Source of the DNA: Bugula neritina
Taxonomy: Eukaryota; Animalia; Bryozoa
NCBI GenBank assembly: GCA_964035545.1
Contig: CAXIUT010000291.1
Coordinates: 15,463-79,462 of the forward strand
Reading direction: 5' to 3'
DNA length: 64,000 nucleotides
The notes below the pieces were generated by a model, which saw only the letters and a list, made by a program, of their open reading frames with translations, did no database searches and was not told where the DNA came from. The position numbers and the translations under genes were made by a program. The first letter of the stretch is position 1, and the number at the start of each line of letters is the position of its first letter. This document shows, piece by piece, positions 39,664-60,191 of this stretch.

Positions 39664-42600
39664 CTATTCCACGGTCACCTGATAAGACACAGTGCCCGAA
39701 GAACCCGGATTCAGCTTATCATTCACTGTCCACGCCCAGTCCAGACTGCCATCCGGGTTTTCATTGGTGGTACATAGCGGCAGTTCGGCGGGCTTGTCGG
39801 TACATAACATGCTTCCCTGAACGATTTCGGTGAATGCGGGTATCGCGTCATTAATTACCAGTTCATTAAGCGGGCCATTACCAATATTCCGGTAGCTGAT
39901 GGTATAGCGCAGGGTTTCGCCCGGTAGAACCACATTACCATCAATATTACGTGTCACGTTCCATACTGATTTGACCAAAGCCAGTTTGCCTTCACCAGCA
40001 ACGGGGTCAGGCGTACCGACCGGGTCAACCACAGGGTCAACCGGTGGTGCTGTTGTGGTTCCGGCGAGGCTACGGGTAATATTCTGATGGATTTGGCGGT
40101 TGTTCGTGAGGCCAAGGGAGTCATCTCCGTAGCTAAAGTCACTTTGGATGTCGATAACATGCATTGCGCCCGTGGTGGCGTTAGGCGGCGAAACCACCTT
40201 AACTAATACACAAACCCGTTGCCCGGCGGTTACATTGATACTGGCGGGCATGGCGCTATCGCCATTGGCGCTGCTCAGGCGGCCATCACAGTTAGCGTCT
40301 AATAATAGCTGGCGACCCCAGTTTAAGGTGGTGGGGTTAGCGTTTTCGGCGGCAATAGTGAAGCTGACGCTGCCATCGCTTTGAGCCGTGAAGATATGCG
40401 GGTGTAAGATCGCACTGTTCGGCAGGATGGTTTGTTCATTATCCAGCTCAAATGCCGGGGGTTTAATGTCGCCAAAGTTGAGGCCGCTGACATGTGTATT
40501 GCTAACGGTGAAGGTCACAGAATTATTAGCGGTGGTGGACAGATAGCCGCTGGGATCTCTGGCATTCGCCGGGTCACAGTGTTGTGGGTTCGGCGCAGAT
40601 TCACCGGCAGCTTCATATACCTGGTAATCCCCCGGTAGTACACGAGTAAACAGATAATCGCCGTTGGCATTAGTACGGGTACTGATACAGGTGTTGCTAT
40701 TGGTATCGTACAGCACGATAGCGACACCACCGATACCGGCTTCCGTCGCATCGTTGTTTGTGTTGGCATTGCTATCGTTAAATACCCGGCCACCCACATT
40801 AAAGCCACCCGGCTCGACGGTCAGCATATAATCCTCGACCTCGCCATCGTTGGCGGCGGTCGTGTGATCCAGTCCCGCCGTGGTTGACCAGCGGAAGCGG
40901 GCAAAGGTTGGGTTAGTGATAGCATTAAGTGGTACGGTGACCGGTATAGTGATAGAGCCATCGGTATCACCATCCTGTAAATCAATGGCAATCTGTTCGC
41001 CGCTATCCGTAAAGTCTCCGTCCCCGTTGAAATCAATCCAGCCTTGCAGGTAGCCGTTTGCACCATTGACGGTGGCTGTGATGTCAGCGCTTTTACCCTG
41101 AGTTAGGGTGGGTATATTGATACCATTATCATCATTCGCACCATCGCTATCATCGCCATCGGCGTTGGGGGATGCCTGGTTGGCACTGTCCGCATCCGGT
41201 GTAGTTGAGCCGAGGTAGATGCTACTGATAATGGCGTGACTGGCTGCACCATAGGTATTGGTGTTGCTACCGTTGGGTGCTGAGCCTGACACCGGAGCGT
41301 CGCCGTAATCAGTGATAATGGTACAAACCGCAGGCACTTCGAGATTCCGACAGTAATTATTGTCATCAACACCGCCCCAGCCGAAGTTGGTGAATTGGTT
41401 AGCGGGTCGGGTTCCGGCTGAATTAGGTAACACGTTAAACGGGTCACTATTTTCGATTAGCGCTACTTGTCCCAGACAGGCTCCGGTGTTCTCAAAACTA
41501 AATACTTCCTGTTCGACCCCGGTCTGCCAGTTAAAGGCGGCTGCGTTAGAGGCTGCGAGACTGAAGGACAGATAATCGACACTGGTATCTTCGGGCGGAG
41601 CATCTTGCCGTGAGTCGAAGCTCCACGCGGTTCCGGTAATGGAACTTTGAATATCCTGTGGGATAAACTGAGAAATTCCGGTTGCCGTAGGAACACGTAT
41701 TGTCACCTGTCCGGTCGAGCTGAGGTCGGGCGACGGTACGCTATTAGGTGTCATAAAGACCCGGTAGCGCCGGTTCACATCGTCCCAGCGAATAGTGTAG
41801 TCGAGTTCGCAGCCAGCAGGCTGTACCTCGAAAACCCTTAAGCTATAATCCTCGACCTCGCCATCACTGGTTGTGGTCGTGTGATCCAGCCCCGCCGTGG
41901 TTGACCAGCGGAAGCGGGCAAAGGTCGGATTAGTGGTGGTGGAAGAGGGCGGCGTGACGTTAAAGGTAATCGTGCCATCGCTGGCGGTTGTATCGTCGGC
42001 GTTGCCATCATCCTGTAAATCGGTGGCTACCTGTTCGCCCGCCTCAAAGGTACCGTTACCATTCCAGTCAATCCAGCCCTGTAGGTAACCACCGGCACCA
42101 CTAACGGTAGCGGTAATGGTTGCCACCGTACCCTGAGTGAGGGTCGGGATACTGATACCATCGTCGTCATCCGTGCCATCGTTGTCGTCACCCTCTGCGC
42201 TGGGGCTGGCCTGATTGGCACTGTCAGCATCCGGCGCGGCGCTACCGAGGTAGGTGCTGCTCACGATATTATGACTGGCTTCACCATAACTATTGGTGCT
42301 GCTGCCATCCGGCGCTGTGCCTGATACCGGCGCATCACCATAATCCATACTACTGGTACAGGCGGCGGGTAGTTCGAGATTCTGGCAGTAGTTATTGTCA
42401 TTCGCACCGCCCCAGCCCAGATTGGTGAACTGGTTCCCCGGTCGGTTACCAACTGAATTCGGGGAGATATTAAACGGATCGCTGTCCTCGAACAGTGCTA
42501 CATCACCGAGACAGGCTCCGCCATTCTCAAAGCTGAACACTTCCTGTTCGACACCGCTCTGCCAGTTAAAAGCACTGGCTGTTGAGGCCGCGAGGCTGAA

Positions 42601-45600
42601 TGACAGGTAATCGGCCGTATTATCTTCGGTTGGTGCGTCGGCGCGTGAACTCTGACTCCAGGTGGTACCGGTGATCGGGTTTTGAATATCCTGGGCGACA
42701 AAGCGACCAGCTCCGGTGGCGGTGGGTACACGAATGGTCACCTGACCGGTCATACTGAGGTCAGGCGAAGGCGTCCGGTTCGGCGTCATAAAGACACGGT
42801 AGCGCGCATTCGCGGCATCCCAGCGAATAGTGTAGTCGAGCGCACAACTGTCGGCCTGTGCGGTCACCGTTAAGCGGTAGTCCTCGACCTCGCCATCGCT
42901 GGTTGTGGTCGTGTGATCCAGCCCCGCCGTGGTTGACCAGCGGAAGCGGGCAAAGGTCGGATTAGTGGTCGCGGAAGAGGGCGGCGTGACGTTAAAGGTA
43001 ATCGTGCCATCACTAGCGGTTGTATCGTCGGCGTTGCCATCATCCTGTAAGTCGGTGGCGACCTGTTCGCCCGCATCAAAAGCACCGTTACCATTCCAGT
43101 CAATCCAGCCCTGTAGGTAACCACCGGCACCACTCACGGTAGCGGTAATGGTTGCCACCGTACCCTGAGTTAGCGTCGGGATACTGATACCATCGTCGTC
43201 ATCCGTGCCATCGTTATCATCACCCTCTGCGCTGGGGCTGGCCTGATTGGCACTGTCAGCATCCGGCGCGGCGCTACCGAGGTAGGTGCTGCTCACGATA
43301 TTATGACTGGCTTCACCGTAACTATTGGTGCTGCTGCCATCCGGCGCTGTGCCTGATACCGGCGCATCACCATAATCCATACTACTGGTACAGGCGGCGG
43401 GTAGTTCCAGATTCTGGCAGTAGTTATTGTCATTTGCACCGCCCCAGCCCAGATTGGTGAACTGGTTACCTGGTCGGTTACCAACTGAATTCGGGGAGAT
43501 ATTAAACGGATCGCTGTCCTCGAACAGTGCTACATCACCGAGACAGGCTCCGCCATTCTCAAAGCTGAACACTTCCTGTTCAACACCGCTCTGCCAGTTA
43601 AAAGCACTGGCTGTTGAGGCTGCGAGGCTGAATGACAGGTAATCGGCCGTATTATCTTCGGTTGGCGCATCCGCCCGTGAACTCTGACTCCAGGTGGTAC
43701 CAGTGATCGGGTTTTGAATATCCTGGGCGACAAAGCGATCCGCTCCGGTGGCGGTGGGGACGCGTATGGTCACCTGACCGGTCATACTGAGGTCAGGCGA
43801 AGGCGTCCGGTTCGGCGTCATAAAGACACGGTAGCGCGCATTCGCTGCATCCCAGCGAATAGTGTAGTCGAGCGCACAACTGTCGGCCTGTGCGGTCACC
43901 GTTAAGCGGTAATCCTCGACCTCGCCATCACTGGCGGCAGTAGTACTATCCAGCCCCTGTGTCGCGGACCAGCGGAAGCGGGCAAAGGTCGGATTAGTGG
44001 TGGCGGAAGAAGGCGGCGTGACGTTAAAGGTAATCGTGCCATCGCTGGCGGTTGTATCGTCGGCGTTGCCATCATCCTGTAAATCGGTAGCGACCTGTTC
44101 GCCCGCCTCAAAAGCACCGTTACCATTCCAGTCAATCCAGCCCTGTAGGTAGCCGCCGGCACCACTAACGGTAGCGGTAATAGTAGCCACCGTATCCTGA
44201 GTTAGCGTCGGGATATTGATACCATCATCGTCATTCGTACCATCGTTGTCGTCACCCTCCGCGCTGGGGCTGGCCTGATTAGCACTGTCAGCATCCGGCG
44301 CGGCGCTACCGAGGTAGGTGCTGCTCACGATATTATGACTGGCTTCACCATAACTATTGGTGCTGCTGCCATCCGGCGCTGTGCCTGATACCGGCGCATC
44401 ACCATAATCCATGCTGCTGCTACAAGCGGCGGGTAGTTCCAGATTCTGGCAGTAGTTATTGTCATTTGCACCGCCCCAGCCCAGATTGGTGAACTGGTTA
44501 CCCGGTCGGTTACCGACTGAATTCGGGGAGATATTAAACGGATCGCTGTCCTCGAACAGTGCCACATCACCGAGACAGGCTCCGCCATTCTCAAAGCTGA
44601 ACACTTCCTGTTCGACACCGCTCTGCCAGTTAAAAGCACTGGCTGTTGAGGCCGCGAGGCTGAATGACAGGTAATCGGCCGTATTATCTTCGGTTGGTGC
44701 GTCGGCGCGTGAACTCTGGCTCCAGGTGGTACCGGTGATCGGGTTTTGAATATCCTGGGCGACAAAGCGATCCGCTCCGGTGGCGGTGGGTACACGAATG
44801 GTCACCTGACCGGTCATACTGAGGTCGGGCGAAGGCGTCCGGTTCGGCGTCATAAAGACACGGTAGCGCGCATTCGCTGCATCCCAGCGAATAGTGTAGT
44901 CGAGCGCACAACTGTCGGCCTGTGCGGTCACAGTTAAGCGGTAATCCTCGACCTCGCCATCACTGGCGGCAGTAGTACTATCCAGCCCCTGTGTCGCGGA
45001 CCAGCGGAAGCGGGCAAAGGTCGGATTAGTGGTGGTGGAAGAAGGCGGCGTGACGTTAAAGGTAATCGTGCCATCGCTGGCGGTTGTATCGTCGGCGTTG
45101 CCATCATCCTGTAAATCGGTAGCGACCTGTTCGCCCGCATCAAAGGTACCGTTACCATTCCAGTCAATCCAGCCCTGTAGGTAACCACCAGCACCACTCA
45201 CCGTAGCGGTAATAGTAGCCACCGTACCCTGAGTTAGCGTCGGGATACTGATACCATCATCATCATTCGTACCATCGTTATCATCACCCTCTGCGCTGGG
45301 GCTGGCCTGATTGGCACTGTCAGCATCCGGCGCGGCACTACCGAGATAGGTGCTACTTACGATAGTGTGACTGGCTTCACCATAACTATTAGTACTACTG
45401 CCATCCGGCGCTGTGCCTGATACCGGCGCATCACCATAATCCACGCTGCTGCTACAGGCGGCGGGTAGTTCCAGATTCTGGCAGTAGTTATTGGCGCTAA
45501 ATGCGCCCCAGCCCAAATTAGTGAACTGGTTGCCTGGTCGGTTGCCGGCTGAATTTGGGAAGACATTAAACGGATCACTGTTCTCTAGCAGTGCCACATC

Positions 45601-48600
45601 ACCGAGGCAGGCTCCGCCATTTTCGAAGCTGAACACTTCCTGTTCGACGCCGCTCTGCCAGTTAAAGGCCGCCACGTTGCTGGCCGCGAGGCTGAATGAG
45701 AGGTAATCGGCGCTGGTATCTTCGGTCGGTGCATCCGCCCGTGAACTCTGGCTCCAGGCGGTACCGGTGATCGGGTTTTGAATATCTTGTGCCACAAAGC
45801 GATCCGCTCCGGTGGCGGTGGGTACACGAATGGTCACCTGGCCGGTCATACTAAGGTCGGGTGAAGGCGTCCGGTTTGGTGTCATAAAGACACGGTAGCG
45901 CGCATTCGCTGCATCCCAGCGAATAGTGTAGTCGAGCGCACAACTGTCGGCTTGTGCGGTCACCGTTAAGCGGTAATCCTCGACCTCACCGTCACTGGCG
46001 GCAGTAGTACTATCCAGTCCCTGCGTCGCGGACCAGCGGAAGCGGGCAAAGGTCGGATTAGTGGTCGCGGAAGAGGGCGGCGTGACGTTAAAAGTAATCG
46101 TGCCATCGCTGGCGGTTGTATCGTCGGCGTTGCCATCATCCTGTAAATCGGTGGCGACCTGTTCGCCCGCCTCAAAAGCACCGTTACCATTCCAGTCAAT
46201 CCAGCCCTGTAGGTAACCACTGGCACCACTCACGGTAGCGGTAATAGTAGCCACCGTACCCTGGGTTAGGGTTGGGATACTGATACCATCATCATCATTC
46301 GTACCATCGTTGTCGTCACCGTCGGCACCGGGACTGGCCTGACTGGTGCTATCAGCATCCGGCGCAGCGCTACCGAGATAGGTGCCGCTCACGATAGTGT
46401 GACTGGCTTCACCATAACTATTAGTACTGCTGCCATCCGGCGCTGTGCCCGATACCGGCGCATCACCGTAATCCATGCTGCTGCTACAAGCGGCGGGTAG
46501 TTCGAGATTCTGACAGTAGTTATTGTCATTTGCACCGCCCCAGCCCAGATTGGTGAATTGGTTACCCGGTATTGTATTGGCTGAATTCGGGAAGACATTA
46601 AACGGATCACTGTTCGCCAGTAACGAGACATCACCGAGGCAGGCTCCGCCATTTTCGAAGCTGAATACTTCCTGCTCGACACCGGTCTGCCAGTTAAAGG
46701 CTGCCACGTTGTTGGCCGCGAGGCTGAATGAGAGGTAATCGGCCGTATTATCTTCGTTCGGTGCGTCGGTGCGTGAATTCTGACTCCAGGTGGTACCAGT
46801 GATCGGGTTTTGCAGATCCTGGGCCACAAAGCGATCAGCTCCGCTCGCGGTGGGGACGCGTATGGTTACCTGACCGGTCAGACTGAGGTCAGGCGAAGGT
46901 GTCCGGTTCGGCGTCATAAAGACACGGTAACGTGCATTCGCGGCATCCCAGCGAATAGTGTAGTCGAGCGCACAACTGGCAGCTTGTGCGATCACTGCTA
47001 AGCGGTAATCCTCCACTTCACCGTCACTGGCGGCGGTGGTGCTATCCAGCCCCTGTGTCGCGGACCAGCGGAAGCGGGCAAAGGTCGGATTAGTTGTTGC
47101 GGAAGAGGGCGGCGTGACGTTAAAGGTAATCGTGCCATCGCTGGCGGTTGTATCGTCAGCGTTGCCATCATCCTGTAAATCGGTGGCGACCTGTTCGCCC
47201 GCCTCAAAAGCACCGTTACCATTCCAGTCAATCCAGCCCTGTAGGTAACCACCGGCACCACTCACCGTAGCGGTAATAGTAGCCACCGTGCCCTGGGTTA
47301 GGGTCGGGATACTGATACCATCATCATCATTCGTACCATCGTTATCGTCACCCTCTGCGCTGGAGCTGGCCTGATTGGCACTGTCAGCATCCGGCGCGGC
47401 GCTACCGAGATAGGTGCCGCTCACGATAGTGTGACTGGCTTCACCGTAACTATTAGTACTGCTGCCATCCGGCGCTGTGCCTGATACCGGCGCATCACCG
47501 TAATCCACGCTGCTGCTACAAGCGGCGGGTAGTTCGAGATTCTGACAATAGTTATTGTCATTTGCACCGCCCCAGCCCAGATTGGTGAACTGGTTACCCG
47601 GTATTGTATTGGCTGAATTCGGGAAGACATTAAACGGATCACTGTTCGCCAGTAACGAGACATCACCGAGGCAGGCTCCGCCATTCTCGAAGCTGAATAC
47701 TTCCTGCTCGACACCGCTCTGCCAGTTAAAGGCTGCCACGTTGTTGGCCGCCAGGCTGAACGAGAGGTAATCGGCCGTATTATCTTCGTTCGGTGCGTCG
47801 GTGCGTGAATTCTGACTCCAGGTGGTACCAGTGATCGGGTTTTGCAGATCCTGGGCCACAAAGCGATCCGCTCCGCTCGCGGTGGGGACGCGTATGGTTA
47901 CCTGACCGGTCAGGCTGAGGTCAGGCGAAGGTGTCCGGTTCGGCGTCATAAAGACACGGTAACGTGCATTCGCTGCGTCCCAGCGAATAGTGTAGTCGAG
48001 TGCGCAACTGGCAGCTTGTGCGATCACTGCTAAGCGGTAATCCTCCACTTCACCGTCACTGGCGGCGGTGGTGCTATCCAGTCCCTGCGTCGCGGACCAG
48101 CGGAAGCGGGCAAAGGTCGGATTAGTGGTGGCGGAAGAGGGCGGTGTGACGTTAAAGGTAATCGTGCCATCGCTGGCGGTTGTATCGTCAGCGTTGCCAT
48201 CATCCTGTAAATCGGTGGCGACCTGTTCGCCCGCCTCAAAGGCACCGTTACCATTCCAGTCAATCCAGCCCTGTAGGTAACCACCAGCACCACTTACCGT
48301 AGCGGTAATAGTAGCCACCGTGCCCTGGGTTAGCGTCGGGATATTGATACCATCGTCATCATTCGTACCATCGTTATCGTCACCGTCGGCACCGGGACTG
48401 GCCTGACTGGTGCTATCAGCATCCGGCGCAGCGCTACCGAGATAGGTGCCGCTCACGATAGTGTGGCTGGCTTCACCGTAACTATTGGTGCTGCTGCCAT
48501 CCGGCGCTGTGCCCGATACCGGCGCATCACCGTAATCCATGCTGCTGCTACAAGCGGCGGGTAGTTCGAGATTCTGACAGTAGTTATTGTCATTTGCACC

Positions 48601-49644
48601 GCCCCAGCCCAGGTTGGTGAACTGGTTACCCGGTATTGTATTGGCTGAATTCGGGAAGACATTAAACGGATCACTGTTCGCCAGTAACGAGACATCACCG
48701 AGGCAGGCTCCGCCATTCTCGAAGCTGAATACTTCCTGCTCGACACCGGTCTGCCAGTTAAAGGCTGCCACGTTGTTGGCCGCGAGGCTGAACGAGAGGT
48801 AATCGGCCGTATTATCTTCGGTCGGTGCGTCGGTGCGTGAATTCTGGCTCCAGGTGGTACCAGTGATCGGGTTTTGCAGATCCTGTGCCACAAAGCGATC
48901 AGCTCCGCTCGCGCTGGGGACGCGTATGGTTACCTGACCGGTCAGACTGAGGTCAGGCGAAGGTGTCCGGTTCGGCGTCATAAAGACACGGTAGCGCGCA
49001 TTCGTTGCATCCCAGCGAATAGTGTAGTCGAGTGCGCAGGCATCAGCGGGAGGGGGAGGTGCGCAATTTGCAGCGCCTTCCAGGTTCGCCCGGTAATTGT
49101 TATCACCGGCCGATCCCCAGCCCAGATTGGTGAATTGATGACCGGGGCTGGTGCCGGCTGAATTTGGAAGTGTATTGAAGGGGTCATTGTCTTCGATTAA
49201 TGTTACCGCCCCCTGACAAGTTCCGCCATTTTCGAAACTGAATACTTCCTGTTCTACCCCGGCCTGCCAGCTAAAGGCCGCCGGGTTACTAACAGAGAGA
49301 CCAAAAGATAAATAATCAACGGTATTGTCTTCGTGAGGTGAATCCGCACGTGAATTCTGACTCCAGACCGTACCGGCAACTGCACTTTGGAGATCTTGTA
49401 CTATAAAACGGTCGGCCCCGGTTGCTGTGGGTACTTTTATCGTTACCTGACCGGTCATACTAAGATTAGGTGAGGGTATGCTATCGGGTACCATGAAAAC
49501 CCGATAGCGTTCATCTACTTCATCCCACCGGATAATATAATCCAGCACCGCCGCCGCTGAAGCACTTTGCGCTAATAATAAGAACAATAGTGTAGCTATA
49601 AAACGCAACGTAGAAATATTGTTGAATTTAATGAAACAAGACAT
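39664..49644 (-). CDS. 3326-aa secreted repeat protein: 9 copies of a ~165-aa beta-rich (cohesin-like?) domain alternating with 8 GEVED domains, then SdrD_B-like and DUF11-like domains
   Basis: Signal peptide ending AQSASA; repeats LDY(T/I)IRWD...GNQFTNLGWG x9; DYGDAP...WIDWNGNG...ARFR...GEVEDY x8; GRVFND.N..E.GI; PGETLRYTISYRNIG...INDAIP. Confidence 0.9.
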   Translation of the reverse strand: MSCFIKFNNISTLRFIATLLFLLLAQSASAAAVLDYIIRWDEVDERYRVFMVPDSIPSPNLSMTGQVTIKVPTATGADRFIVQDLQSAVAGTVWSQNSRADSPHEDNTVDYLSFGLSVSNPAAFSWQAGVEQEVFSFENGGTCQGAVTLIEDNDPFNTLPNSAGTSPGHQFTNLGWGSAGDNNYRANLEGAANCAPPPPADACALDYTIRWDATNARYRVFMTPNRTPSPDLSLTGQVTIRVPSASGADRFVAQDLQNPITGTTWSQNSRTDAPTEDNTADYLSFSLAANNVAAFNWQTGVEQEVFSFENGGACLGDVSLLANSDPFNVFPNSANTIPGNQFTNLGWGGANDNNYCQNLELPAACSSSMDYGDAPVSGTAPDGSSTNSYGEASHTIVSGTYLGSAAPDADSTSQASPGADGDDNDGTNDDDGINIPTLTQGTVATITATVSGAGGYLQGWIDWNGNGAFEAGEQVATDLQDDGNADDTTASDGTITFNVTPPSSATTNPTFARFRWSATQGLDSTTAASDGEVEDYRLAVIAQAASCALDYTIRWDAANARYRVFMTPNRTPSPDLSLTGQVTIRVPTASGADRFVAQDLQNPITGTTWSQNSRTDAPNEDNTADYLSFSLAANNVAAFNWQSGVEQEVFSFENGGACLGDVSLLANSDPFNVFPNSANTIPGNQFTNLGWGGANDNNYCQNLELPAACSSSVDYGDAPVSGTAPDGSSTNSYGEASHTIVSGTYLGSAAPDADSANQASSSAEGDDNDGTNDDDGISIPTLTQGTVATITATVSGAGGYLQGWIDWNGNGAFEAGEQVATDLQDDGNADDTTASDGTITFNVTPPSSATTNPTFARFRWSATQGLDSTTAASDGEVEDYRLAVIAQAASCALDYTIRWDAANARYRVFMTPNRTPSPDLSLTGQVTIRVPTASGADRFVAQDLQNPITGTTWSQNSRTDAPNEDNTADYLSFSLAANNVAAFNWQTGVEQEVFSFENGGACLGDVSLLANSDPFNVFPNSANTIPGNQFTNLGWGGANDNNYCQNLELPAACSSSMDYGDAPVSGTAPDGSSTNSYGEASHTIVSGTYLGSAAPDADSTSQASPGADGDDNDGTNDDDGISIPTLTQGTVATITATVSGASGYLQGWIDWNGNGAFEAGEQVATDLQDDGNADDTTASDGTITFNVTPPSSATTNPTFARFRWSATQGLDSTTAASDGEVEDYRLTVTAQADSCALDYTIRWDAANARYRVFMTPNRTPSPDLSMTGQVTIRVPTATGADRFVAQDIQNPITGTAWSQSSRADAPTEDTSADYLSFSLAASNVAAFNWQSGVEQEVFSFENGGACLGDVALLENSDPFNVFPNSAGNRPGNQFTNLGWGAFSANNYCQNLELPAACSSSVDYGDAPVSGTAPDGSSTNSYGEASHTIVSSTYLGSAAPDADSANQASPSAEGDDNDGTNDDDGISIPTLTQGTVATITATVSGAGGYLQGWIDWNGNGTFDAGEQVATDLQDDGNADDTTASDGTITFNVTPPSSTTTNPTFARFRWSATQGLDSTTAASDGEVEDYRLTVTAQADSCALDYTIRWDAANARYRVFMTPNRTPSPDLSMTGQVTIRVPTATGADRFVAQDIQNPITGTTWSQSSRADAPTEDNTADYLSFSLAASTASAFNWQSGVEQEVFSFENGGACLGDVALFEDSDPFNISPNSVGNRPGNQFTNLGWGGANDNNYCQNLELPAACSSSMDYGDAPVSGTAPDGSSTNSYGEASHNIVSSTYLGSAAPDADSANQASPSAEGDDNDGTNDDDGINIPTLTQDTVATITATVSGAGGYLQGWIDWNGNGAFEAGEQVATDLQDDGNADDTTASDGTITFNVTPPSSATTNPTFARFRWSATQGLDSTTAASDGEVEDYRLTVTAQADSCALDYTIRWDAANARYRVFMTPNRTPSPDLSMTGQVTIRVPTATGADRFVAQDIQNPITGTTWSQSSRADAPTEDNTADYLSFSLAASTASAFNWQSGVEQEVFSFENGGACLGDVALFEDSDPFNISPNSVGNRPGNQFTNLGWGGANDNNYCQNLELPAACTSSMDYGDAPVSGTAPDGSSTNSYGEASHNIVSSTYLGSAAPDADSANQASPSAEGDDNDGTDDDDGISIPTLTQGTVATITATVSGAGGYLQGWIDWNGNGAFDAGEQVATDLQDDGNADDTTASDGTITFNVTPPSSATTNPTFARFRWSTTAGLDHTTTTSDGEVEDYRLTVTAQADSCALDYTIRWDAANARYRVFMTPNRTPSPDLSMTGQVTIRVPTATGAGRFVAQDIQNPITGTTWSQSSRADAPTEDNTADYLSFSLAASTASAFNWQSGVEQEVFSFENGGACLGDVALFEDSDPFNISPNSVGNRPGNQFTNLGWGGANDNNYCQNLELPAACTSSMDYGDAPVSGTAPDGSSTNSYGEASHNIVSSTYLGSAAPDADSANQASPSAEGDDNDGTDDDDGISIPTLTQGTVATITATVSGAGGYLQGWIDWNGNGTFEAGEQVATDLQDDGNADDTTASDGTITFNVTPPSSTTTNPTFARFRWSTTAGLDHTTTTSDGEVEDYSLRVFEVQPAGCELDYTIRWDDVNRRYRVFMTPNSVPSPDLSSTGQVTIRVPTATGISQFIPQDIQSSITGTAWSFDSRQDAPPEDTSVDYLSFSLAASNAAAFNWQTGVEQEVFSFENTGACLGQVALIENSDPFNVLPNSAGTRPANQFTNFGWGGVDDNNYCRNLEVPAVCTIITDYGDAPVSGSAPNGSNTNTYGAASHAIISSIYLGSTTPDADSANQASPNADGDDSDGANDDNGINIPTLTQGKSADITATVNGANGYLQGWIDFNGDGDFTDSGEQIAIDLQDGDTDGSITIPVTVPLNAITNPTFARFRWSTTAGLDHTTAANDGEVEDYMLTVEPGGFNVGGRVFNDSNANTNNDATEAGIGGVAIVLYDTNSNTCISTRTNANGDYLFTRVLPGDYQVYEAAGESAPNPQHCDPANARDPSGYLSTTANNSVTFTVSNTHVSGLNFGDIKPPAFELDNEQTILPNSAILHPHIFTAQSDGSVSFTIAAENANPTTLNWGRQLLLDANCDGRLSSANGDSAMPASINVTAGQRVCVLVKVVSPPNATTGAMHVIDIQSDFSYGDDSLGLTNNRQIHQNITRSLAGTTTAPPVDPVVDPVGTPDPVAGEGKLALVKSVWNVTRNIDGNVVLPGETLRYTISYRNIGNGPLNELVINDAIPAFTEIVQGSMLCTDKPAELPLCTTNENPDGSLDWAWTVNDKLNPGSSGTVSYQVTVE
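40830..49040 (-). repeat. Tandem array with 1032-bp (344-aa) period
   Basis: GCGAATAGTGTAGTCGAG recurs at ~41790, 42825, 43855, 44887, 45919, 46951, 47983 and 49015. Confidence 0.97.
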
Positions 49645-49687
49645 GTTTACCCACTATTATATTTATAATTTAGTCTGATTATTATTA

Positions 49688-49745
49688 CAGTAACGTGTAT
49701 GAAAGGCTTACACCCCGACGGGATGTAAGTCTTCGACTTACACAG
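49688..49745. repeat. Dispersed REP-like element, copy 3
   Basis: CAGTAACGTGTATGAAAGGCTTACACCCCGACGGGATGTAAGTCTTCGACTTACACAG. Confidence 0.75.
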
Positions 49746-49794
49746 CAAGCAGTGTGACAAAATTTACAGCGGGCAAAGCCCCCACACACTTGTA

Positions 49795-50394
49795 CTACGA
49801 ACAGCTAAGCGCTGCGCCGTAATTGCCGAGGTAATTATTACTTTCCACTGTGCCCCAGCCAATATTAGTGAACTGGTTACCCGGACGCGTACCGGCTGAA
49901 TTGTCTGGCACATTAAACGGGTCATCATCATCCATCAGGCGGACATCCGACACACAACCCCCCGAATTACGGAAAGAAAATATCAGTTTTTCCTCGTCCG
50001 CCTCCCATTGGTAGAAGTTGGCGTCACCCGTTAGGCCGACATAGGAGAAGGAAATATAATCGTATTCAGGATTTTCTTCCGGTGCGTCCACACGCGCCGT
50101 TTCCACCCAGCTGGCATCGCCGACATAGTTTTGTACGTCTTCCGCCTGGAACAGGCTATCACCGGGAACCCGGATAGTTAGCTGGCCGGTAAGGCTAAGG
50201 TCGGGTTTCGGTAGTACCGTTGGTTTCATCCAGACCTCATATGTTTCGCCATCATCCGCCAGCGCCAGTTTGTACTCAAGTACCTGTTCGCTGTCGTCTG
50301 CGTTATCCGTTGCGCTGGCTGTACCTATACAACAAGCCAGTAATACACCACCAGCCAGTGGCAGTGTTTGAGGTATAAATTTGGCTATTTTCAT
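49795..50394 (-). CDS. Small secreted protein: a single stand-alone copy of the domain repeated in the 3326-aa protein
   Basis: Signal peptide; LEY...YEVWMKP..PDLSLTGQLTIRVP...RVDAPEEN..DYISF...FSFRNSGGC...DPFN...GNQFTNIGWG aligns by eye along its full length. Confidence 0.9.
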   Translation of the reverse strand: MKIAKFIPQTLPLAGGVLLACCIGTASATDNADDSEQVLEYKLALADDGETYEVWMKPTVLPKPDLSLTGQLTIRVPGDSLFQAEDVQNYVGDASWVETARVDAPEENPEYDYISFSYVGLTGDANFYQWEADEEKLIFSFRNSGGCVSDVRLMDDDDPFNVPDNSAGTRPGNQFTNIGWGTVESNNYLGNYGAALSCS

Positions 50395-50511: not shown

Positions 50512-53500
50512 TTAAGGAGTCACTATTTGGTCCATACCTCCGATTAGAATAAAGTTAGCTGCAAAGACACTATTATTTGGATGTAACAAGACATTAGCTA
50601 ACATAATGTTAATATCATTGTCCGCACCGGCAAATATTGTCATACCATCCATGTTGAGGTCAGTACTAAGGTAACCATGCAGTACGTAGTTGGAGTTAAA
50701 GTACGCTGCGTTACCCGGCGCTGTTAGTACATTACCCAGCACACTGTTCGCATCATTACTGACACCGTAAGCAATGGCAGTTTGATCCTGGTTAGCATCT
50801 CCGGCCCACATGAGTCTAATGCTACCCGCTTCCAGTCGCGCCGGATTCGCTGTGCTATCGCCCATTGCCTGTGTAGTTGGCAACGTGAAATCAACCATCG
50901 TGGTGGTAGCGCTCAGACTAACCGGGTTTTCCGTCATCACACCCGGATGGTTCCGGTGGCGTACGCTAACGTGGTAATCAGCATCCGCGACACCGTAGAA
51001 CGTGATAGTGTCATCACCCGTAGCCGCATTCGCCAGATCACCATCGCGTTGTACCATGACCGCGTAACTGGCTTCGATGGTCGTTGGGTCGGCCGCATTA
51101 CGCAGTTCCAGCAACACCCAATCCACGACATCATCTTCTATATAAGCCGCGTCGGCGACTACCGCCGTACTGAGGGTCTCGGTTCCATCATGACCAAAGG
51201 GTGCTTCGCCATACGGATGCGCCGTCGGTAACAGCTCGCTGGTACGTAGCGTATCATTCATTAGGCCAAGACTGCTGTCGTAGGCCCCCTGTAGATAAGT
51301 ACGCACCTGGAGCTTAACCATTGCTGCGCCGGCAAGCGGAGTCACAATGTCATTGTAGCCATCAGCCGGAGCTACATCTGTTGGCACCGCAAGGGTTTCA
51401 TCAGATTCATCACCGTTGTTAATACCATCGTTATCATAGTCCAGGCTACCATCCGGCGTTCCGTCGGTTGTTTCCGGGTCTAACGGATCGGTACCGACTA
51501 ATGCTTCGTCCGCGTCACTAACGCCGTCGCCGTCGTCATCGGTATCGGTCGCATCCGGTATTCCGTCATTATCGAAATCATTATCCATATAATCCGGAAC
51601 ACCATCACCGTCGGCATCAGGACAGGTATAACCATTCGGACATTCAGCATCGTCATCGACACCATCGCCATCCGCATCACCCGCGCCCGCTGTTTCATCA
51701 TTCGGGTCAAGGTGCGCCGGGATACCGTCGCCATCGTTGTCTTTCCAGATACCGGTTTCCACGCCACCCTGCTCGCCGCCGGTACCATCAGTACCTTCAC
51801 CGTCGCCATCAGCGTTGTCGTCGTTGTGATCCGTCGCGCCGTCACCATCGGTGTCGAGTATGTTGGATTCCAGACGATCCGGGATACCATCGTTATCGGT
51901 ATCGGTCGTACCTTCCGTTGCATCCGGCGTACCGTCACCGTCGGAGTCAGTATCCATGTAATCCGGGATACCATCGCCATCGGAGTCAGGACAGATATAG
52001 CCATTCGGACATTCAACGTCGTCGTCGATACCGTCGCCATCCGCATCACCCATACCCGCTGTTTCATCATTCGGGTCAAGGTGCGCCGGGATACCGTCGC
52101 CATCGTTGTCTTTCCAGGGGCCTTCTAACACACCGGCCTGTTCGCCGCCGGTACCATCTGTACCTTCGCTATCGCCGTCAGCATCGTTGTCGTCGAAATC
52201 GAAGTAACCATCACCATCGGTGTCGAGTATGTTGGATTCCAGTCGATCCGGAATACCGTCACCGTCTTCGTCGGTGGTGCCTTCGTCTACATCTGAGATG
52301 CCATCGTTATCGTCGTCGGTGTCGGTTATATCCGGAATGCCGTCGCCGTCACTGTCGATGAGATCCGGTGTATCCATGTAATCCGGGATACCATCACCAT
52401 CGGAGTCAGGACAGGTATAGCCATTCGGACATTCAACGTCGTCGTTGATACCATCGCCATCCGCATCACCCGCGCCAGCCGTGTTGTCATTCGGGTCAAG
52501 GTGCGCCGGGATACCATCGCCATCGTTGTCGTTCCAAACACCGGTTTCCACGCCATCCTGCTCGCCGCCGGTACCATCAGTACCTTCACCGTCGCCATCA
52601 GCGTTGTCGTCGTTGTAATCCTTCGCGCCGTCACCATCGGTGTCGAGTATGTTGGATTCCAGACGATCCGGGATACCATCGTTATCGGTATCGGTCGTAC
52701 CTTCCGTTGCATCCGGCGTACCGTCACCGTCGGAGTCAGTATCCATGTAATCCGGGATACCATCGCCATCGGAGTCAGGACAGATATAGCCATTCGGACA
52801 TTCAACGTCGTCGTCGATACCGTCGCCATCCGCATCACCCATACCCGCTGTTGCATCATTCGGGTCAAGGTGCGCCGGGATACCGTCGCCATCGTTGTCG
52901 TTCCAGATACCGGTTTCTACGCTATTCTGCTCGCCGCCGGTACCATCAGTACCTTCGCTGTCGCCATCAGCGTTGTCGTCGTTGTAATCCATCGCGTTGT
53001 CACCATCGGTGTCGAGTATGTTGGATTCCAGACGATCCGGGATACCATCGTTATCGGTATCGGTCGTACCTTCCGTTGCATCTAATATACCGTCACCGTC
53101 GGAGTCAGTATCCATGTAATCCGGGATACCATCACCATCGGAGTCAGGGCAGATGTAACCATTCGGACATTCAACGTCGTCGTCGATACCGTCGCCATCC
53201 GCATCACCCATACCCGCTGTTGCATCATTCGGGTCAAGGTGCGCCGGGATACCGTCGCCATCGTTGTCGTTCCAGGGGCCTTCTAACACACCGTCCTGTT
53301 CGCCGCCGGTACCATCCGTACCTTCGCTATCGCCGTCAGCATCGTTGTCGTCGAAATCGAAGTTACCATCACCGTCGGTGTCGAGTATGTTGGATTCCAG
53401 TCGATCCGGAATACCGTCGCCATCGGTGTCGGTGGTGCCTTCGTCTACATCTGAGATGCCATCGTTATCGTCGTCGGGGTCGGTTATATCCGGAATGCCG

Positions 53501-56500
53501 TCGCCGTCACTGTCGATGAGATCCGGTGCATCCATGTAATCCGGGACACCATCACCATCGGAGTCAGGACAGATATAGCCATTCGGACATTCAACGTCGT
53601 CGTTGATACCATCGCCATCCGCATCACCCGCGCCAGCCGTGTCGTCATTCGGGTCAAGGTGCGCCGGGATACCGTCGCCATCGTTGTCGTTCCAGGGGCC
53701 TTCTAAAACACCGTCCTGTTCGCCGTTATTGCCATTATCACCATCGTCTCCTTCAATGTCACCGTCAGCATTGCTGTCGTTGAAATCGAAGTTACCGTCA
53801 CCGTCGGTGTCGATAATGTTGGATTCAATGCGATCCGGAATACCGTCACTATCGGTGTCGGTGGTGCCTTCGTCTACATCTGAGATGCCATCGTTATCGT
53901 CGTCGGGGTCGGTTGCGTCCGGAATGCCGTCGCCGTCACTGTCGACATTAGCTCCACCCCGGAAATCAACTTCGGGGCTGTAGGCGTCAACATTAAGTAA
54001 GCCGTCGCTGCTGCCCAGCGGATCATTCACACTGCCATCAGGATCAGCATAGGTCGGCGCGGTCGCTACGGCGCTTCCGCCTTCGTCGGCGTCGGATATA
54101 CCGTCACCATCGCTGTCCGGATCCAAATAGTCGGGCGTCGTATCAGCCGTGTCGTTGGCATCGGCGTTGGCCGTGTTGGCCCCTGCGATAAAGGCGTTGT
54201 TCGATTCGCCGGTTGCAAAGCCAACGCCAGCGGTAGCGGTATCGTAGATATCAAGGATACCGTCATCGTCGCTGTCGGCGGCGTCATCGGTGCCAGCGTA
54301 AGCGACGTAATAAGTCGATGCGCGAGCTTCGGTCGCATCGCCGATACCATCATCGTCACTATCCAAGTCGAGATAGTCAGCCAGATCGTCACCAGCCGTG
54401 TTGAAGCTGTCAACGGGGGCTGTACCGATAGAGTCGGCAGCTGTATTTCCAGTTGAGATGTCAGCATCAAAGATATCCATCAGGCCATCGCCATCGGCAT
54501 CAGCAACACCGCCATTGGCAGCGGCAGCTTCAGCAGCGGAGATTGTCCCGTCGTTGTTGGTGTCGGCTGCGATTAGAGCCGCCGTTGCACCACTTTCAAC
54601 CAGGTCGCTGATTCCGTCGTTGTCACTGTCGAGATCCTCATGGTTGCTGATACCGTCACCATCGGTGTCAAGAAACCCTGCTGAACTACCAGAGCTACTA
54701 CTGCTACTACTACTGCCGCTACCACTACTCAGGCCATAGTCCTGGTCAGTAAAAGTCTCAATGACCTGACCACCAAAATTCATGTGTATCCCTGAGAGCA
54801 ATACCGTCGGCATACCGAGTAGTTCGTAGTTCCCATTCCCGTCCGTTACCAAGGCAAAAGTATCGTAATGTGATTGAATTGCACCAATCAAATCAGGCGT
54901 GGTAAAAGAAGAGACGTCTAATGAAACCGCATCATTATTGATAAACAGCTGGTCATTTGTGTAGTCAGCACGCATCAGATATGCTGATGTTATACCTGTA
55001 TCAATGTCTTCAATGTCTGTTCCGGCTATGTGCAACGTGGCATCGGTACCAGCGCTATTAGCCGTGAATGTATTGCCAGCCGAATCAAGAATAAAGGGGG
55101 GGCCTTGTACTGGATTAACAATATCAACAGCTGTACCGCTGAAGTTAGGATCGGTTATCACGAGCTGGGTAACGGGAATTGGGGCTGCGGTGGCATTAGA
55201 TAGCCACGTCCAAAGCGTACCGTCGTCTTTTAACGCGATAGCCCGCTGGGTATACGGATAGGCGCTAAAATTGTCGCTGATTTGAACGACACCCGAGCCC
55301 AAGCCCGTAAACTCAGCCACTGTGCCAGTCGAATCAACGGGTGCAGTATAGACCGTGCCATCTGCTCGGAAAGCGTAAAAACTCCCAGTCCCGCCACCAC
55401 CAGAAACCGAGACGAAGTCTTTATTCTCCGCTCCAGTGTATAGTGCTGCCGCATCTGTTCCAATGGTAGTGGAGGTCATTGGAAGGCGCATGATTCGGCC
55501 ATCATCTAACAAGAGCGCGGCATTGCCGTGGTCTGCGGTAACAGACGTGACCTTGGCGCCGGTTGGGATCCCAATAATTGGCACGGGATTACCAGCGGGG
55601 TCTCTTATCACACGACCATATAAGTTGCCATCGGTACCGATCATGAGTGCATGAGATTCAATCGAAAAGAAGGTCTCAAAGGTGATCCCATTACTGGCCG
55701 AATTGGTCCAGTCAGCCGTCGTAACTCTGTCCCTGAATCGGGTTATCGTACCGTCGGTCATGAGGACAACGTGCCCCTCTCGTCCGTCTTCAGCATAAGC
55801 GCCTGCATTCGGCCCCATTAATGCGGTAAAAATGTCACTGGCATTTATTTCGGAAGGTGCCTCTACACTATCCAGAATCCCATCGTTGTCAGCGTCGATG
55901 TCGCTGGCGTCGGGAACGCCGTCGCCGTCGGAGTCGGCTACGCTACGGAAATCAACTTCGGCGCTGTCGGCGTCAACATTAAGTAAGCCGTCGCTGCCGC
56001 CCAGCGGATCATTCACACTTCCATCAGGATCAGCATAGGTCGGCGCGGTCGCTACGGCGCTTCCGCCTTCGTCGGCGTCGGTTATGCCGTCACCATCGCT
56101 GTCCGGATCCAAATAGTCGGGCGTCGTATCAGCCGTGTCGTTGGCATCGGCGTTGGCCGTGTTGGCCCCGGCGATAAAGGCGTTGTTCGATTCGCCGGTT
56201 GCAAAGCCAACGCCAGCGGTAGCGGTATCGTAGATATCAAGGATACCATCATCGTCGCTGTCGGCCGCGTCATCGGTGCCAGCGTAAGCGACGTAATAAG
56301 TCGATGCGCGAGCTTCGGTCGCATCGCCGATACCATCATCGTCACTATCCAAGTCGAGATAGTCAGCCAGATCGTCACCAGCTGTGTTGAAGCTGTCAAC
56401 GGGGGCTGTACCGATAGAGTCGGCAGCTGTATTTCCAGTCGAGATGTCAGCATCAAAGATATCCATCAGGCCATCGCCATCGGCATCAGCAACACCGCCA

Positions 56501-59500
56501 TTGGCAGCGGCAGCTTCAGCAGCGGAGATTGTCCCGTCGTTGTTGGTGTCGGCTGCGATTAGAGCCGCCGTTGCACCACTTTCAACCAGGTCGCTGATTC
56601 CGTCGTTGTCACTGTCGAGATCCTCATGGTTGCTGATACCGTCACCATCGGTGTCAAGAAACGCTGCTGAACTACCAGAGCTGCTACTACCACTACCGCT
56701 ACCTCCGCTCAGGCCATAGTCCTGGTCGGTAAAAGTCTCAATGACCTGACCACCAAAATTCATGTGTATCCCTGAGAGCAATACCGTCGGCATACCGAGT
56801 AGTTCGTAGTTCCCATTCCCGTCCGTTACCAAGGCAAAAGTATCGTAATGTGATTGAATTGCACCAATCAAATCAGGCGTGGTAAAAGAAGAGACGTCTA
56901 ATGAAACCGCATCATTATTGATAAACAGCTGGTCATTTGTGTAGTCAGCACGCATCAGATATGCTGATGTTATACCTGTATCAATGTCTTCAATGTCTGT
57001 TCCGGCTATGTGCAACGTGGCATCGGTACCAGCGCTATTAGCCGTGAATGTATTGCCAGCCGAATCAAGAATAAAGGGGGGGCCTTGTACTGGATTAACA
57101 ATATCAACAGCTGTACCGCTGAAGTTAGGATCGGTTATCACGAGCTGGGTAACGGGAATTGGGGCTGCGGTGGCATTAGATAGCCACGTCCAAAGCGTAC
57201 CGTCGTCTTTTAACGCGATAGCCCGCTGGGTATACGGATAGGCGCTAAAATTGTCGCTGATTTGAACGACACCCGAGCCCAAGCCCGTAAACTCAGCCAC
57301 TGTGCCAGTCGAATCAACGGGTGCAGTATAGACTGTGCCATCTGCTCGGAAAGCGTAAAAACTCCCAGTCCCGCCACCACCAGAAACCGAGACGAAGTCT
57401 TTATTCTCCGTTCCAGTGTATAGTGCTGCCGCATCTGTTCCAATGGTAGTGGAGGTCATTGGAAGGCGCATGATTCGGCCATCATCTAACAAGAGCGCGG
57501 CATTGCCGTGGTCTGCGGTAACAGACGTGACCTTGGCACCGGTTGGGACCCCAATAATTGGCACGGGATTACAACTGGGTCTCTTATCACACGACCATAT
57601 AAGTTGCCATCGGTACCGATCATGAGTGCATGAGATTCAATCGAAAAGAAGGTCTCAAAGGTGATCCCATTACTGGCCGAATTGGTCCAGTCAGGCCGTC
57701 GTAACTCTGTCCCTGAATCGGGTTATCGTACCGTCGGTCATGAGGACAACGTGCCCGTCTCGTCCGTCTTCAGCATAAGCGCCTGCATTCGGCCCCATTA
57801 ATGCGGTAAAAATGTCACTGGCATTTATTTCGGAAGGTGCCTCTACACTATCCAGAATCCCATCGTTGTCAGCGTCGATGTCGCTGGCGTCGGGAACGCC
57901 GTCGCCGTCGGAGTCGGCTACGCTACGGAAATCAACTTCGGCGCTGTCGGCGTCAACATTAAGTAAGCCGTCGCTGCCGCCCAGCGGATCATTCACACTG
58001 CCATCAGGATCAGCATAGGTCGGCGCGGTCGCTACGGCGCTTCCGCCTTCGTCGGCGTCGGACACGCCGTCACCATCGCTGTCCAGATCCAAATAGTCGG
58101 GCGTCGAATCAGCCGTGTCGTTGGCATCGGCGTTGGCCATGTTGGCCCCGGCAATAAAGGCGTTGTTCGATTCACCGGTTGCAAAGCCAACTCCGGCGGT
58201 AGCGGTATCGTAGATATCAAGGATACCGTCATCGTCGCTGTCGGCGGCGTCATCGGTGCCAGCGTAGGCGACGTAGTCGGTTGAAGCGCGAGCTTCGGTC
58301 GCATCGCCGATACCGTCGTTGTCGCTATCTAGGTCGAGGTAATCAGGCGTGCCATCGGCCACCGTTTCACTATCGACCGGAGCGGTTCCAATTGATGCGG
58401 CATCTGAACTGTCTGCTTTGTCAGCATCGAACAGATCCATCAAGCCATCGCCGTCGGCGTCGGCAACGCCTGTTCCGCCATTAGCCAGATCATAGGCTAT
58501 AGCTTCAGCATCGGAGATTGTCCCGTCGTGGTTGGTGTCAGCTGCGATTTGAGCCGCCGTTGCACCACTTTCAACCAGGTCGCTGATCCCGTCGTTGTCA
58601 CTGTCCAGGTCAGCATGGTTGCTGATGCCGTCACCATCGGTGTCAAGGAAGCCTGCTGAACTAACAGAGCTGCTACTGCCGCTGCTACCGCTACCGCTGC
58701 TTAGGTCATAGTCCTGATCGGTAAAGGTCAGAAGGACCTGATCAGGAATAATATGTGCCGATGAAAGACCCAGCGTTCCTATGCCGAGTAGTTCGTAGTT
58801 CCCATTACCGTCCGTTACCACGGCCAGCGTATCTGAATGGAGTTGAATGGCACCGACCAAATCGGGCGTACTGAAAGAAGATATGGCTAGTGAAACCGTC
58901 GTCTCATCAACGAAAAGCTGGTCATTGGTGTAGTCAGCACGCAACAGAAATCGTGTGTGACCCATGTCAATGTCTTCAATGCCTGTACCGGCTATGTGCA
59001 ACGTGGCATCGGTACCAGCAAGATTAACCTCAAACGTATTACCAGCCGAATCAAGAACATACACAGTCCCGGTTGTTGTGGCCGTAACATCAACCACCGG
59101 ACCGCTGAAGTTAGTATCGGTGACCGTGAGCTGAGTAGCGGTAATTGGCTGTGAAGTAGCGGTAGGATCCCATGTGAAAACAGTACCGTCATCTTTTAAT
59201 GCGACAGCTCTACCTCTGGTAGCATCAGTAATTTTCGTAACACCCGAACCCAGGGTTGTAAACTCCTCCACTGTGCCTGTTGTAGTAGCGGGTGCTGTAT
59301 AAACCGTGCCATCTGCCCGGAAGGCATAGAAATTCCATTCACGCCACCACCAGCAACAGAGACGAACCCTGTATTATCCGCTCCGTTATACAGTGCCGCT
59401 GGTGCATTAGAGACATTGAAGGGTAGTGGAAGGCGCATCATTCGACCATCATCTAGCAAGAGCGCGGCATTTTTGTCGTCAGCGGTAACCGAAACGACCC

Positions 59501-60191
59501 TGGTGCCAGTTGGAATCCCTGTAACGACAGTGAAGCGAGCAGCATTCATTCCTATTTCATGGTAATAAAAATTTCCATCGCTACCATTCGCGAATACGTG
59601 AGCTTCATGTGAAAAGACGTCTTCAAAGGTAATCCCATTAGTGGCCGAATTAGTCCAGTCAGTAATTACAGACTGTACCACCACTCGCGTTAGCTCGCCG
59701 TTGGGCGTGCGGAAGACAATTCCTGCGGCACCGTCTTCACCATAAACGCCTGCATTCGCTCCCATTAATGCGGTAAAAATTGCATTGGCATCCGGAGCGG
59801 CCGGAGCCTCTGTACTATCCAAAATACCGTCGTTGTCAGCGTCGATGTCGCTGGCGTCGGGAACGCCGTCGCCGTCGGAGTCGGTACTATTAGCCTCTGC
59901 CGCCGGTACCAACGTTTCCAGAATACCCACATAACGCGAATGAAACCCGGAAGAAGAATCAAATAAACCACCCGCCGCTGTTAGCGACAACATCATAACG
60001 AATACAATGCCGAAAAAAGACGCTAAGATGGAGGAGAGTCCGGGCGGACTCCCGGTTCGTCGCCTTTTTCGCTCTCTTGATACTCTATTGAAAGGCGGGG
60101 ATGCCTGCTGTGGGTGAGAATATGACTGAGTGTTATCCGGGGTTGTATCGTGACCGCCCATAGGAATGTGTGATTTTTCTCGTTGGCTCAT
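50512..60191 (-). CDS. ~3200-aa surface protein split into three ORFs by frameshifts: three 660-aa modules, Asp-rich Ca-binding (TSP3-like) repeats, C-terminal beta domain plus dockerin-like module
   Basis: ORFs 59196-60191, 57691-59271 and 50512-57564 join through indels at ~59340, ~57694 and ~57572, seen by comparison with the intact repeat copy; many DxDxDGIPD motifs; C-terminal GDANQD and DLNMDG loops. Confidence 0.85.
51500..53945 (-). repeat. Six Asp/Gly-rich units of ~369 or ~420 bp, each containing ECPNGY(I/T)CPD
   Basis: CATTCGGACATTCA recurs at ~51634, 52002, 52422, 52791, 53160 and 53580. Confidence 0.9.
53960..59890 (-). repeat. Three copies of a ~1980-bp (660-aa) module; two near-identical, one divergent
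   Basis: For example 55004 vs 56984 and 55832 vs 57812 give identical shadow ORFs 1980 bp apart. Confidence 0.93.

Follow-up and report, generated by a model that had tools for sequence, protein, structure and literature searches.

Organization of the Locus

The window (the whole stretch of DNA analyzed here, 64,000 nucleotides in length) carries three genes arranged head-to-tail on the minus strand, encoding a giant protein with a C-terminal tail, a 199-aa protein, and a scaffold protein in which one domain is repeated nine times (Table 1). The 199-aa protein is a stand-alone, or free, copy of the repeated domain. Its gene is separated by 117 nt from the stop codon of the 2350-aa tail ORF upstream, in agreement with the initial annotation, which had placed it directly downstream of the tail-bearing gene, and by 150 nt from the nine-repeat gene that follows. 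Around the three genes are unrelated housekeeping genes encoding a fused MFS-transporter/acyltransferase/AMP-binding enzyme, AAA ATPases, a GST, an SDR, and enzymes of the Leloir pathway, so that the unit is a three-gene island.

The contig is bacterial and most like the relatives of Thiothrix, although the assembly in which it lies has the size of a eukaryotic genome; a symbiont or associate of the sequenced organism is the probable source of the window. A symbiont-metagenome sequencing run contains sequences nearly identical to parts of the stretch. Within the 216-Mb assembly (321 contigs), from which counts of bacterial genes are lower bounds, there are exactly ten copies of the domain, namely the nine scaffold repeats and the free copy, and one tail gene.

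Table 1. Features of the three-gene island and their positions in the window
Feature	Position	Strand	Basis
Stand-alone gene, ATG ORF, 199 aa	49795..50394	-	ORF and translation
Signal peptide, aa 1-28	50311..50394	-	Probable signal-peptidase I site Ala-Ser-Ala, read by eye
Cohesin-like domain, aa 37-199	49798..50286	-	Alignments, AlphaFold2 model, structure searches
GC-rich hairpin and T-rich run, terminator-like, 10 nt past the stop of the stand-alone gene	49769..49785	-	
Scaffold protein, 3326 aa	39664..49644	-	Translation, Pfam, NCBIfam
Scaffold repeats, first three	49057-49557, 48544-49044, 47512-48012	-	
Scaffold repeats, middle three	46480-46980, 45448-45948, 44416-44916	-	
Scaffold repeats, last three	43384-43884, 42352-42852, 41317-41817	-	
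Giant upstream protein, main ORF 2350 aa	50512..57564	-	~620-aa repeats, Ca-binding TSP3-like repeats, C-terminal XDoc-like tail
X-module-like β-sandwich of the tail, tail residues 1-~164	50827..51318	-	pLDDT mostly >95; aligns with the X module of the CipA XDoc
Dockerin-like part of the tail, duplicated D-x-N-x-D loop and helix	50515..50826	-	Model and duplication test

The scaffold protein consists of a signal peptide and nine cohesin-like domains that alternate with eight GEVED domains, and it has no tail. The GEVED domains were recognized as eight stretches (PF20009, E 1.9e-111), and Pfam and NCBIfam models identify SdrD_B-like and DUF11-type modules at the C terminus. In a maximum-likelihood tree of 71 domains the nine repeats form one clade, indicating recent amplification. 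A scaffold unit, made up of a domain and its GEVED linker, is 344 aa (1032 nt) long. Between window positions 41300 and 49050, seven of the nine units are mutually 90-99% identical, and the copy number of the assembled scaffold may therefore be inexact.

The reading of the giant tail gene extends over three frames, as ORFs 60191..59196, 59271..57691, and 57564..50512 of the minus strand. The first two share 55-78% identity with the ~620-aa repeats found in the main ORF, and the breaks between frames, which fall inside these repeats, may be either an assembly error in long repeats or real decay. At the start of the ORF at 60191..59196 are an extended charged run and a single hydrophobic segment. 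The Pfam model TSP3_bac gave a weak match in the 2350-aa ORF.

The Product of the Stand-alone Gene

The 199-aa product comprises a Sec-type signal peptide and one domain of ~163 aa, and nothing else. Residues 37-199 align with each of the nine scaffold repeats at 42-46% identity over 163 columns without large gaps, and BLASTP of the protein against scaffold repeat 2 gave 44% identity over 165 residues (E 8e-48). The end-to-end alignment of the mature protein with all nine repeats that had been noted in the initial annotation was thus recovered, as was every motif block named there. The two cysteines described as conserved and as a possible disulfide correspond to Cys-114 and Cys-165 in domain numbering and are invariant in 56 members of the family.

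The initial annotation saw no clear lipobox in the protein. The sequence L-L-A-C at residues 18-21 does fit a loose lipobox pattern, but its cysteine is not conserved. Six orthologues that we inspected lack this signal-peptide cysteine and have plain Ala-x-Ala sites instead. A lipoprotein reading of the window copy was considered and dropped for that reason.

A terminator-like hairpin follows the stand-alone gene (Table 1), and stable hairpins (z ≤ -2.5 relative to shuffled sequences) are found after 17 of its 38 orthologues. The hairpin hints, if only weakly, that the free copy may be made in excess over the product of the downstream gene. Between the free copy and the scaffold gene, at window positions 49687-49750, contigs from the source run pile up on ~60 nt at 88-95% identity and continue into unlike sequence, as they would for a dispersed short repeat; searches of the genome and the window found no other copies of this stretch. 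One symbiont-metagenome run, stored as contigs and regarded as RNA by guess only, has two short contigs on the stretch, at 49745-50031 and 50594-950.

A Domain Family outside Curated Sequence Models

Pfam and NCBIfam gave no match for the 199-aa protein and, at E ≤ 10, none for any of the 56 family members. The Cohesin model PF00963 likewise matched neither the 199-aa protein (E ≤ 10) nor any of the 56. A profile search of PDB sequences with the domain returned one row, at chance level, and the profile built from the family matched no well-characterized family. The proposal that the domain is an unnamed, bounded unit is upheld, with limits of ~163 aa that are set by the stand-alone copy.

A word-based protein search retrieved 69 homologues, nearly all of 158-223 aa, from Thiothrix, Thiofilum, and uncultured Thiotrichaceae, labeled either "hypothetical" or "cadherin." The latter name, which NCBI and UniProt give to orthologues, was rejected, as no cadherin model matches the protein or any of the 56 members. 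In T. nivea, cadherin domains are found in a different gene of the same cluster, and the label looks like a transfer from this neighboring multi-domain gene.

When 1.84 billion cluster representatives were searched exhaustively with a profile, 661 matched at E ≤ 1e-3, of which 510 were at E ≤ 1e-10. Architectures were counted in the best 151 of the 661. In 137 of these 151 representatives no other module stands between the signal peptide and the domain, and 21 are of stand-alone size; single-copy and multi-copy members are found across the family. Family members include T9SS proteins of Saprospiraceae and other Bacteroidota.

Free and embedded copies have one residue in common, in at least 90% of the copies, at 30 alignment columns, about half of them in one C-terminal loop block. 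This pattern of conservation suggests that free and embedded copies bind the same ligand.

Free Copies as a Separate Lineage

The maximum-likelihood tree of 71 domains included 15 free copies, among them that of the window. All 15 lie on one side of a single split with a support of 100/100, and all embedded copies lie on the other. The free copy is 55-63% identical to its orthologues across three GTDB families, and in 48 of the 49 domain-bearing genomes of the Thiothrix order the best match is an ORF of stand-alone size. The free copy is old and has been kept as a lineage of its own.

These data bear on whether the free copy could simply be a decaying fragment of a multi-domain gene, with no function of its own. 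Frame breaks do occur in neighboring genes, in this and in other assemblies. However, the stand-alone gene has its own signal peptide, an intact frame, and a fixed place in the cluster (see below), and both its identity to distant orthologues and its fully supported separation from every embedded copy argue against decay. We regard this explanation as extremely improbable.

Predicted Fold of the Domain

An AlphaFold2 model of the domain was built on 56 sequences (pLDDT 86.5, pTM 0.85). The modeled chain forms a sandwich of eight main strands with short bridges, followed by a long loop region of lower confidence at residues ~121-155. The predicted model has the topology of a cohesin, a flattened β-sandwich of about 140-170 residues.

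When the model was compared with 48,161 PDB chains in the VIA wide search, cohesins occupied ranks 1-15, with root mean square deviations of 3.0-3.9 Å over 116-138 residues and Z-scores of 7.2-8.9, values that even at their highest come close to those described by the tool as common among models that lack a clear match. The weight of the match to the cohesin fold, as judged from the model, lies in the uniformity of the match list and not in the Z-scores alone. Foldseek, which is independent of the VIA wide search, also returned mostly cohesins as its best rows in the PDB (2vo8, E 3.4e-3), followed by CBM3 and CBM2 (E ~1e-2), with no row reaching E 1e-3. A shape search of the ESM Atlas gave two clusters of unnamed and T9SS proteins of Bacteroidota as the top matches (TM 0.73-0.75). 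These top Bacteroidota matches are probably true relatives of the domain. Clusters with members matched by the PF00963 Cohesin model were found further down (TM 0.55-0.58). Language-model features of the domain lean toward cohesin clusters with a score of 0.83, which we take as a lead only.

The same searches supply the strongest rival to a cohesin-like role. Below the cohesins in the VIA wide list are CBM2, chitin- and cellulose-binding modules, and pilin domains of Gram-positive bacteria (Z 5.7-7.0), and CBM2, CBM3, and chitin-binding modules share the fold. The domain could thus be a carbohydrate-binding module or lectin with a CBM2/CBM3-like jelly roll that fixes giant surface proteins to a polysaccharide of the sheath, capsule, or host surface, in which case the free copy would be a soluble glycan binder and the tail would have some other partner. 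The most conserved block of the domain is the long loop region (pLDDT 68-76), which is not evidently the β-sheet face through which cohesins bind; it is borne on loops and has many aromatic, Asn, and Gly residues, features common to many sugar sites. Multivalent tandem copies would in addition suit avidity for a polymer. Nevertheless, every CBM ranks below the cohesins in both structure searches, and the tail and the gene order described below are hard to place in such a scheme. We consider a glycan-binding role rather unlikely.

The pilin domains, at Z 6-7, raise a second alternative, namely that the domain is a structural or homotypic module, such as a pilin-like or Ig-like spacer that associates with itself, and that the free copy is the abundant subunit of a surface layer or fiber and has no partnership with the tail. 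A small gene with a hairpin ahead of larger genes recalls the genes of major subunits, and almost all genomes of the clade have retained the free copy. The pilin matches, however, are weaker than those to cohesins and cover multi-domain chains, the hairpin follows only 17 of the 38 orthologues, and a structural subunit would leave unexplained both the XDoc-like tail and the polarity of the architectures. This possibility appears to us distinctly improbable.

Predicted Fold of the Tail

The tail model comprises the last 268 residues of the upstream protein and was built on 64 tails from related loci (pLDDT 90.8, pTM 0.90). A β-sandwich is followed by two loop-helix units, with helices at tail residues 189-198 and 235-245, each preceded by a loop. 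In the predicted model the X module is packed on the dockerin-like part so that the two form one unit.

Only two of the 48,161 chains in the VIA wide search matched the tail at Z ≥ 5, and both are the type II XDoc dyad of Clostridium thermocellum CipA. The tail aligned with 3kcp_A (residues 158-310) and with 5g5d_B at Z 8.4 over 150 of ~156 residues, whereas the next row had a Z-score of 4.8, and the XDoc matches extend to tail residue 263-265. In the Foldseek search of the tail, ranks 1-4 were all type II XDoc chains (best E 9e-4).

A duplicated loop-helix segment is a hallmark of dockerins. The tail contains an internal duplication with 13 of 31 positions identical in an ungapped alignment; its score of 65 was reached by none of 1000 shuffled sequences (20.9 ± 4.1). 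The D-x-N-x-D motif is kept, with the conserved acidic residue that comes after it placed about four residues beyond its position in the canonical 12-residue loop.

By sequence, none of the 64 tails matched the Pfam Dockerin_1 model (PF00404) at E ≤ 10, a scan of the tail with Pfam and NCBIfam models found nothing relevant, and a profile search of PDB sequences gave rows at chance level only. In comparisons of features, the look-alikes of the tail are "hemagglutinin"-type proteins of Bacteroidota, and in one such cluster 19% of the members carry Dockerin_1.

Two independent models, one of the domain and one of the tail, thus appear to indicate the two partners of one known docking system, neither being a member of it by sequence. 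The idea that domain and tail are partners gains support because the domain model matches cohesins and the tail model matches the XDoc dyad. Sequence models give no link to true cohesins and dockerins, and the resemblance may have arisen by convergence.

Architecture and Gene Order in Relatives

Of the best 151 cluster representatives, 37 have the tail, always at the extreme C terminus and always after the domain. The remaining 114 lack a tail, a proportion that would suit a domain with a glycan ligand. On the other hand, a glycan binder predicts neither the polarity of these proteins, domain first and tail last, nor the adjacency of tail genes to domain genes that we observe in two phyla.

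Gene order was examined in a sample of 46 loci from Thiothrix, Thiolinea, Thiofilum, and related MAGs. In the relatives of Thiothrix the cluster begins with the gene for a giant tail protein, followed by the free copy and by a protein composed of a signal peptide, the domain, TSP3 repeats, and the tail. These are often followed by a protein with a signal peptide, two domains, and the tail, and then by a domain protein without a tail, which in T. nivea has a weak match to IPTL-CTERM. Some natural proteins consist only of signal peptide, domain, and tail, as does one of 463 aa (locus L030). In T. nivea the gene for a domain-domain-tail protein (L011:10611-12685) is split into ORFs of 443 and 235 aa, with the change of frame at the start of the tail.

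The sample contained 39 free-copy genes, and adjacency on the upstream side was scored where at least 1.5 kb of upstream sequence was present. In 29 of the 35 loci scored, a tail-ending ORF is present within 1 kb on this side of the free copy, which bears out the suggestion of the initial annotation that stand-alone copies follow genes ending in this module. Adjacency on the downstream side is tighter still (38/38 versus 29/35), an ORF with the domain at its start being found no more than 500 nt downstream of each of the 38 free copies scored. In six loci the cluster opens with the free copy, which has no tail gene upstream, and to describe it as a partner of the upstream tail only would therefore be too narrow.

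Similar pairs occur in Bacteroidota. One genome has two separate loci in which 124-134 nt separate a tail-ending gene from a domain-first gene downstream of it, and a third pair of this kind is found in a Saprospiraceae genome. A Saprospiraceae genome also has, at loci L059-L061 (G108:C537:17604-24195), four tandem genes of 292-307 aa that encode little beyond an XDoc-like tail. By their predicted content these tail-only proteins may be free-standing plugs, the mirror image of a free-standing socket.

Co-occurrence of Domain and Tail

Among 107 species genomes of the Thiothrix order, 49 have both domain and tail, two have the tail only, and 56 have neither; these genomes are one clade, and their co-occurrence was counted as a single event. 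Numbers of domain and tail matches per genome are correlated (Spearman 0.63), a value that is descriptive only. In a sample of 201 genomes of the Bacteroidota order concerned, the domain was found in two and the tail or its β module in 49. Both domain-bearing genomes have full tails, for which the probability by chance is ~0.06, and the Saprospiraceae genome with domain proteins has seven tail matches. We regard the Bacteroidota gene pairs described above as more telling than this count.

No match to Pfam Cohesin or Dockerin_1 was found in four genomes of Thiothrix relatives, each of which has 4-24 tail matches. The XDoc-like tails of these genomes are therefore without a canonical partner there, and this again speaks against a domain that binds glycans, under which the XDoc-like tail would face genomes with no canonical cohesin. 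The Saprospiraceae genome G108, with a divergent domain and tail, also has 16 matches to Pfam Cohesin and eight to Dockerin_1, and two docking systems may coexist in it.

Proposed Role of the Free Copy

We propose, as a suggestion whose chances of being right or wrong we judge to be evenly balanced, that the 199-aa protein is a monovalent free cohesin-like member of a non-cellulosomal cohesin/XDoc-like system for surface assembly. The domain would be the socket and the tail, an X module plus a dockerin-like part, would be the plug of a protein-protein docking pair. Binding of the tail by the domain would require Ca2+. Proteins that begin with the domain, end with the tail, or do both would be joined outside the cell into surface assemblies. 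The nine-socket scaffold could take up as many as nine copies of the giant tail-bearing protein, and in Thiothrix the two-ended proteins could chain between an anchored base and a tail-only tip. Against the proposal count the single tail gene found for ten domains in this assembly, a gene moreover spread over three frames, and the six loci with no tail gene ahead of the free copy.

In such an assembly the free copy, a socket with neither tail nor anchor, would be able only to occupy a tail. For this reason it may act as a cap or competitor, as an escort that shuttles a tail-bearing protein during export, or as a regulator of assembly. The initial annotation had likewise read the protein as a putative monovalent cap, chaperone, or adaptor for the tail, an interpretation that is partly upheld. 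In producers of cellulosomes, monovalent free scaffoldins have been proposed to be shuttles, stabilizers, or regulators (PMC5590126).

More tentatively, the domain-first/tail-last proteins could be self-linking monomers that form head-to-tail chains or fibers outside the cell, terminated by the free copy. The IPTL-CTERM protein or the scaffold protein would be the base of such a fiber, the giant tail-only protein would be its tip, and the free copy would be a dedicated chain terminator that sets fiber length. If so, bacterial surface fibers would have a new mode of construction, common to filamentous sulfur bacteria and some Bacteroidota, which may serve attachment to a host. We hold this extension to be conceivable but doubtful.

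Cellulose-degrading Firmicutes are the best-known setting for the pairing of cohesins with dockerins, and surveys of such pairs depend on sequence models. Such surveys would miss the present family, which has at least 661 clusters and occurs in Gram-negative filamentous sulfur oxidizers, including an apparent animal-associated symbiont, and in some Bacteroidota. In a literature search we found no paper linking Thiothrix with cohesin and dockerin, and a search for Thiothrix and cadherin gave irrelevant papers only. If the proposed pairing is true, it would explain how very large adhesive surface structures are assembled in these bacteria, it would provide a name and a testable function for proteins now labeled "cadherin" or "hypothetical," and it would offer protein engineering a new orthogonal plug-and-socket pair. 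The free copy, one domain of 163 residues, is the simplest reagent for tests of these ideas.

Comparison with Known Docking Systems

Among cohesins of non-cellulosomal origin are the best structural matches of the domain. These are modules of Clostridium perfringens glycoside hydrolases (2vo8, 2jh2, 2w1n) and of Archaeoglobus fulgidus (2xdh), with 2vo8 at Z 8.9, and they belong to pairs that also act outside cellulose degradation. Unlike the present family, the C. perfringens and A. fulgidus modules are matched by Pfam models. CBM2 and CBM3 have the same general β jelly roll as the domain and score below the cohesins.

As a free protein, the window copy resembles the monovalent free scaffoldins ScaW1 and ScaW2 of Pseudobacteroides cellulosolvens in being a secreted single socket with no anchor and no plug, and it resembles the autonomous cohesin of Ruminococcus flavefaciens (PDB 4n2o), a structural match to the domain at Z 7.3. 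It differs from the monovalent free scaffoldins in being unrelated to them in sequence. Whereas scaffoldins of this kind are variable, the free copy is a single-copy core gene with a fixed position in its cluster, present in 48 of 49 genomes.

The closest parallel for the system as a whole is the type II cohesin/XDoc pair of C. thermocellum CipA (PDB 3kcp, 5g5d, and 2b59). The tail model aligns with the whole of the XDoc dyad, the domain model has the jelly-roll shape of a cohesin, and in both systems sockets come first and the XDoc comes last. The CipA scaffold carries nine sockets, as does the scaffold of the window. The differences are nevertheless considerable. The Pfam models Cohesin and Dockerin_1 match neither the domain nor the tail; the organisms that carry the system belong to the Gram-negative sulfur bacteria and the Bacteroidota instead of the cellulolytic Firmicutes; and the cargo consists of giant Ca-binding repeat proteins and not of enzymes. 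The D-x-N-x-D loops of the tail appear to be about four residues longer than the 12-residue loops of canonical dockerins, and the domain, unlike the CipA cohesins, has a conserved pair of cysteines capable of forming a disulfide and a long conserved loop block. Taking the two models with these likenesses and differences, we suggest that docking of the cohesin/XDoc type may take a new, sequence-divergent form at this locus, in which the free copy would be the monovalent member.
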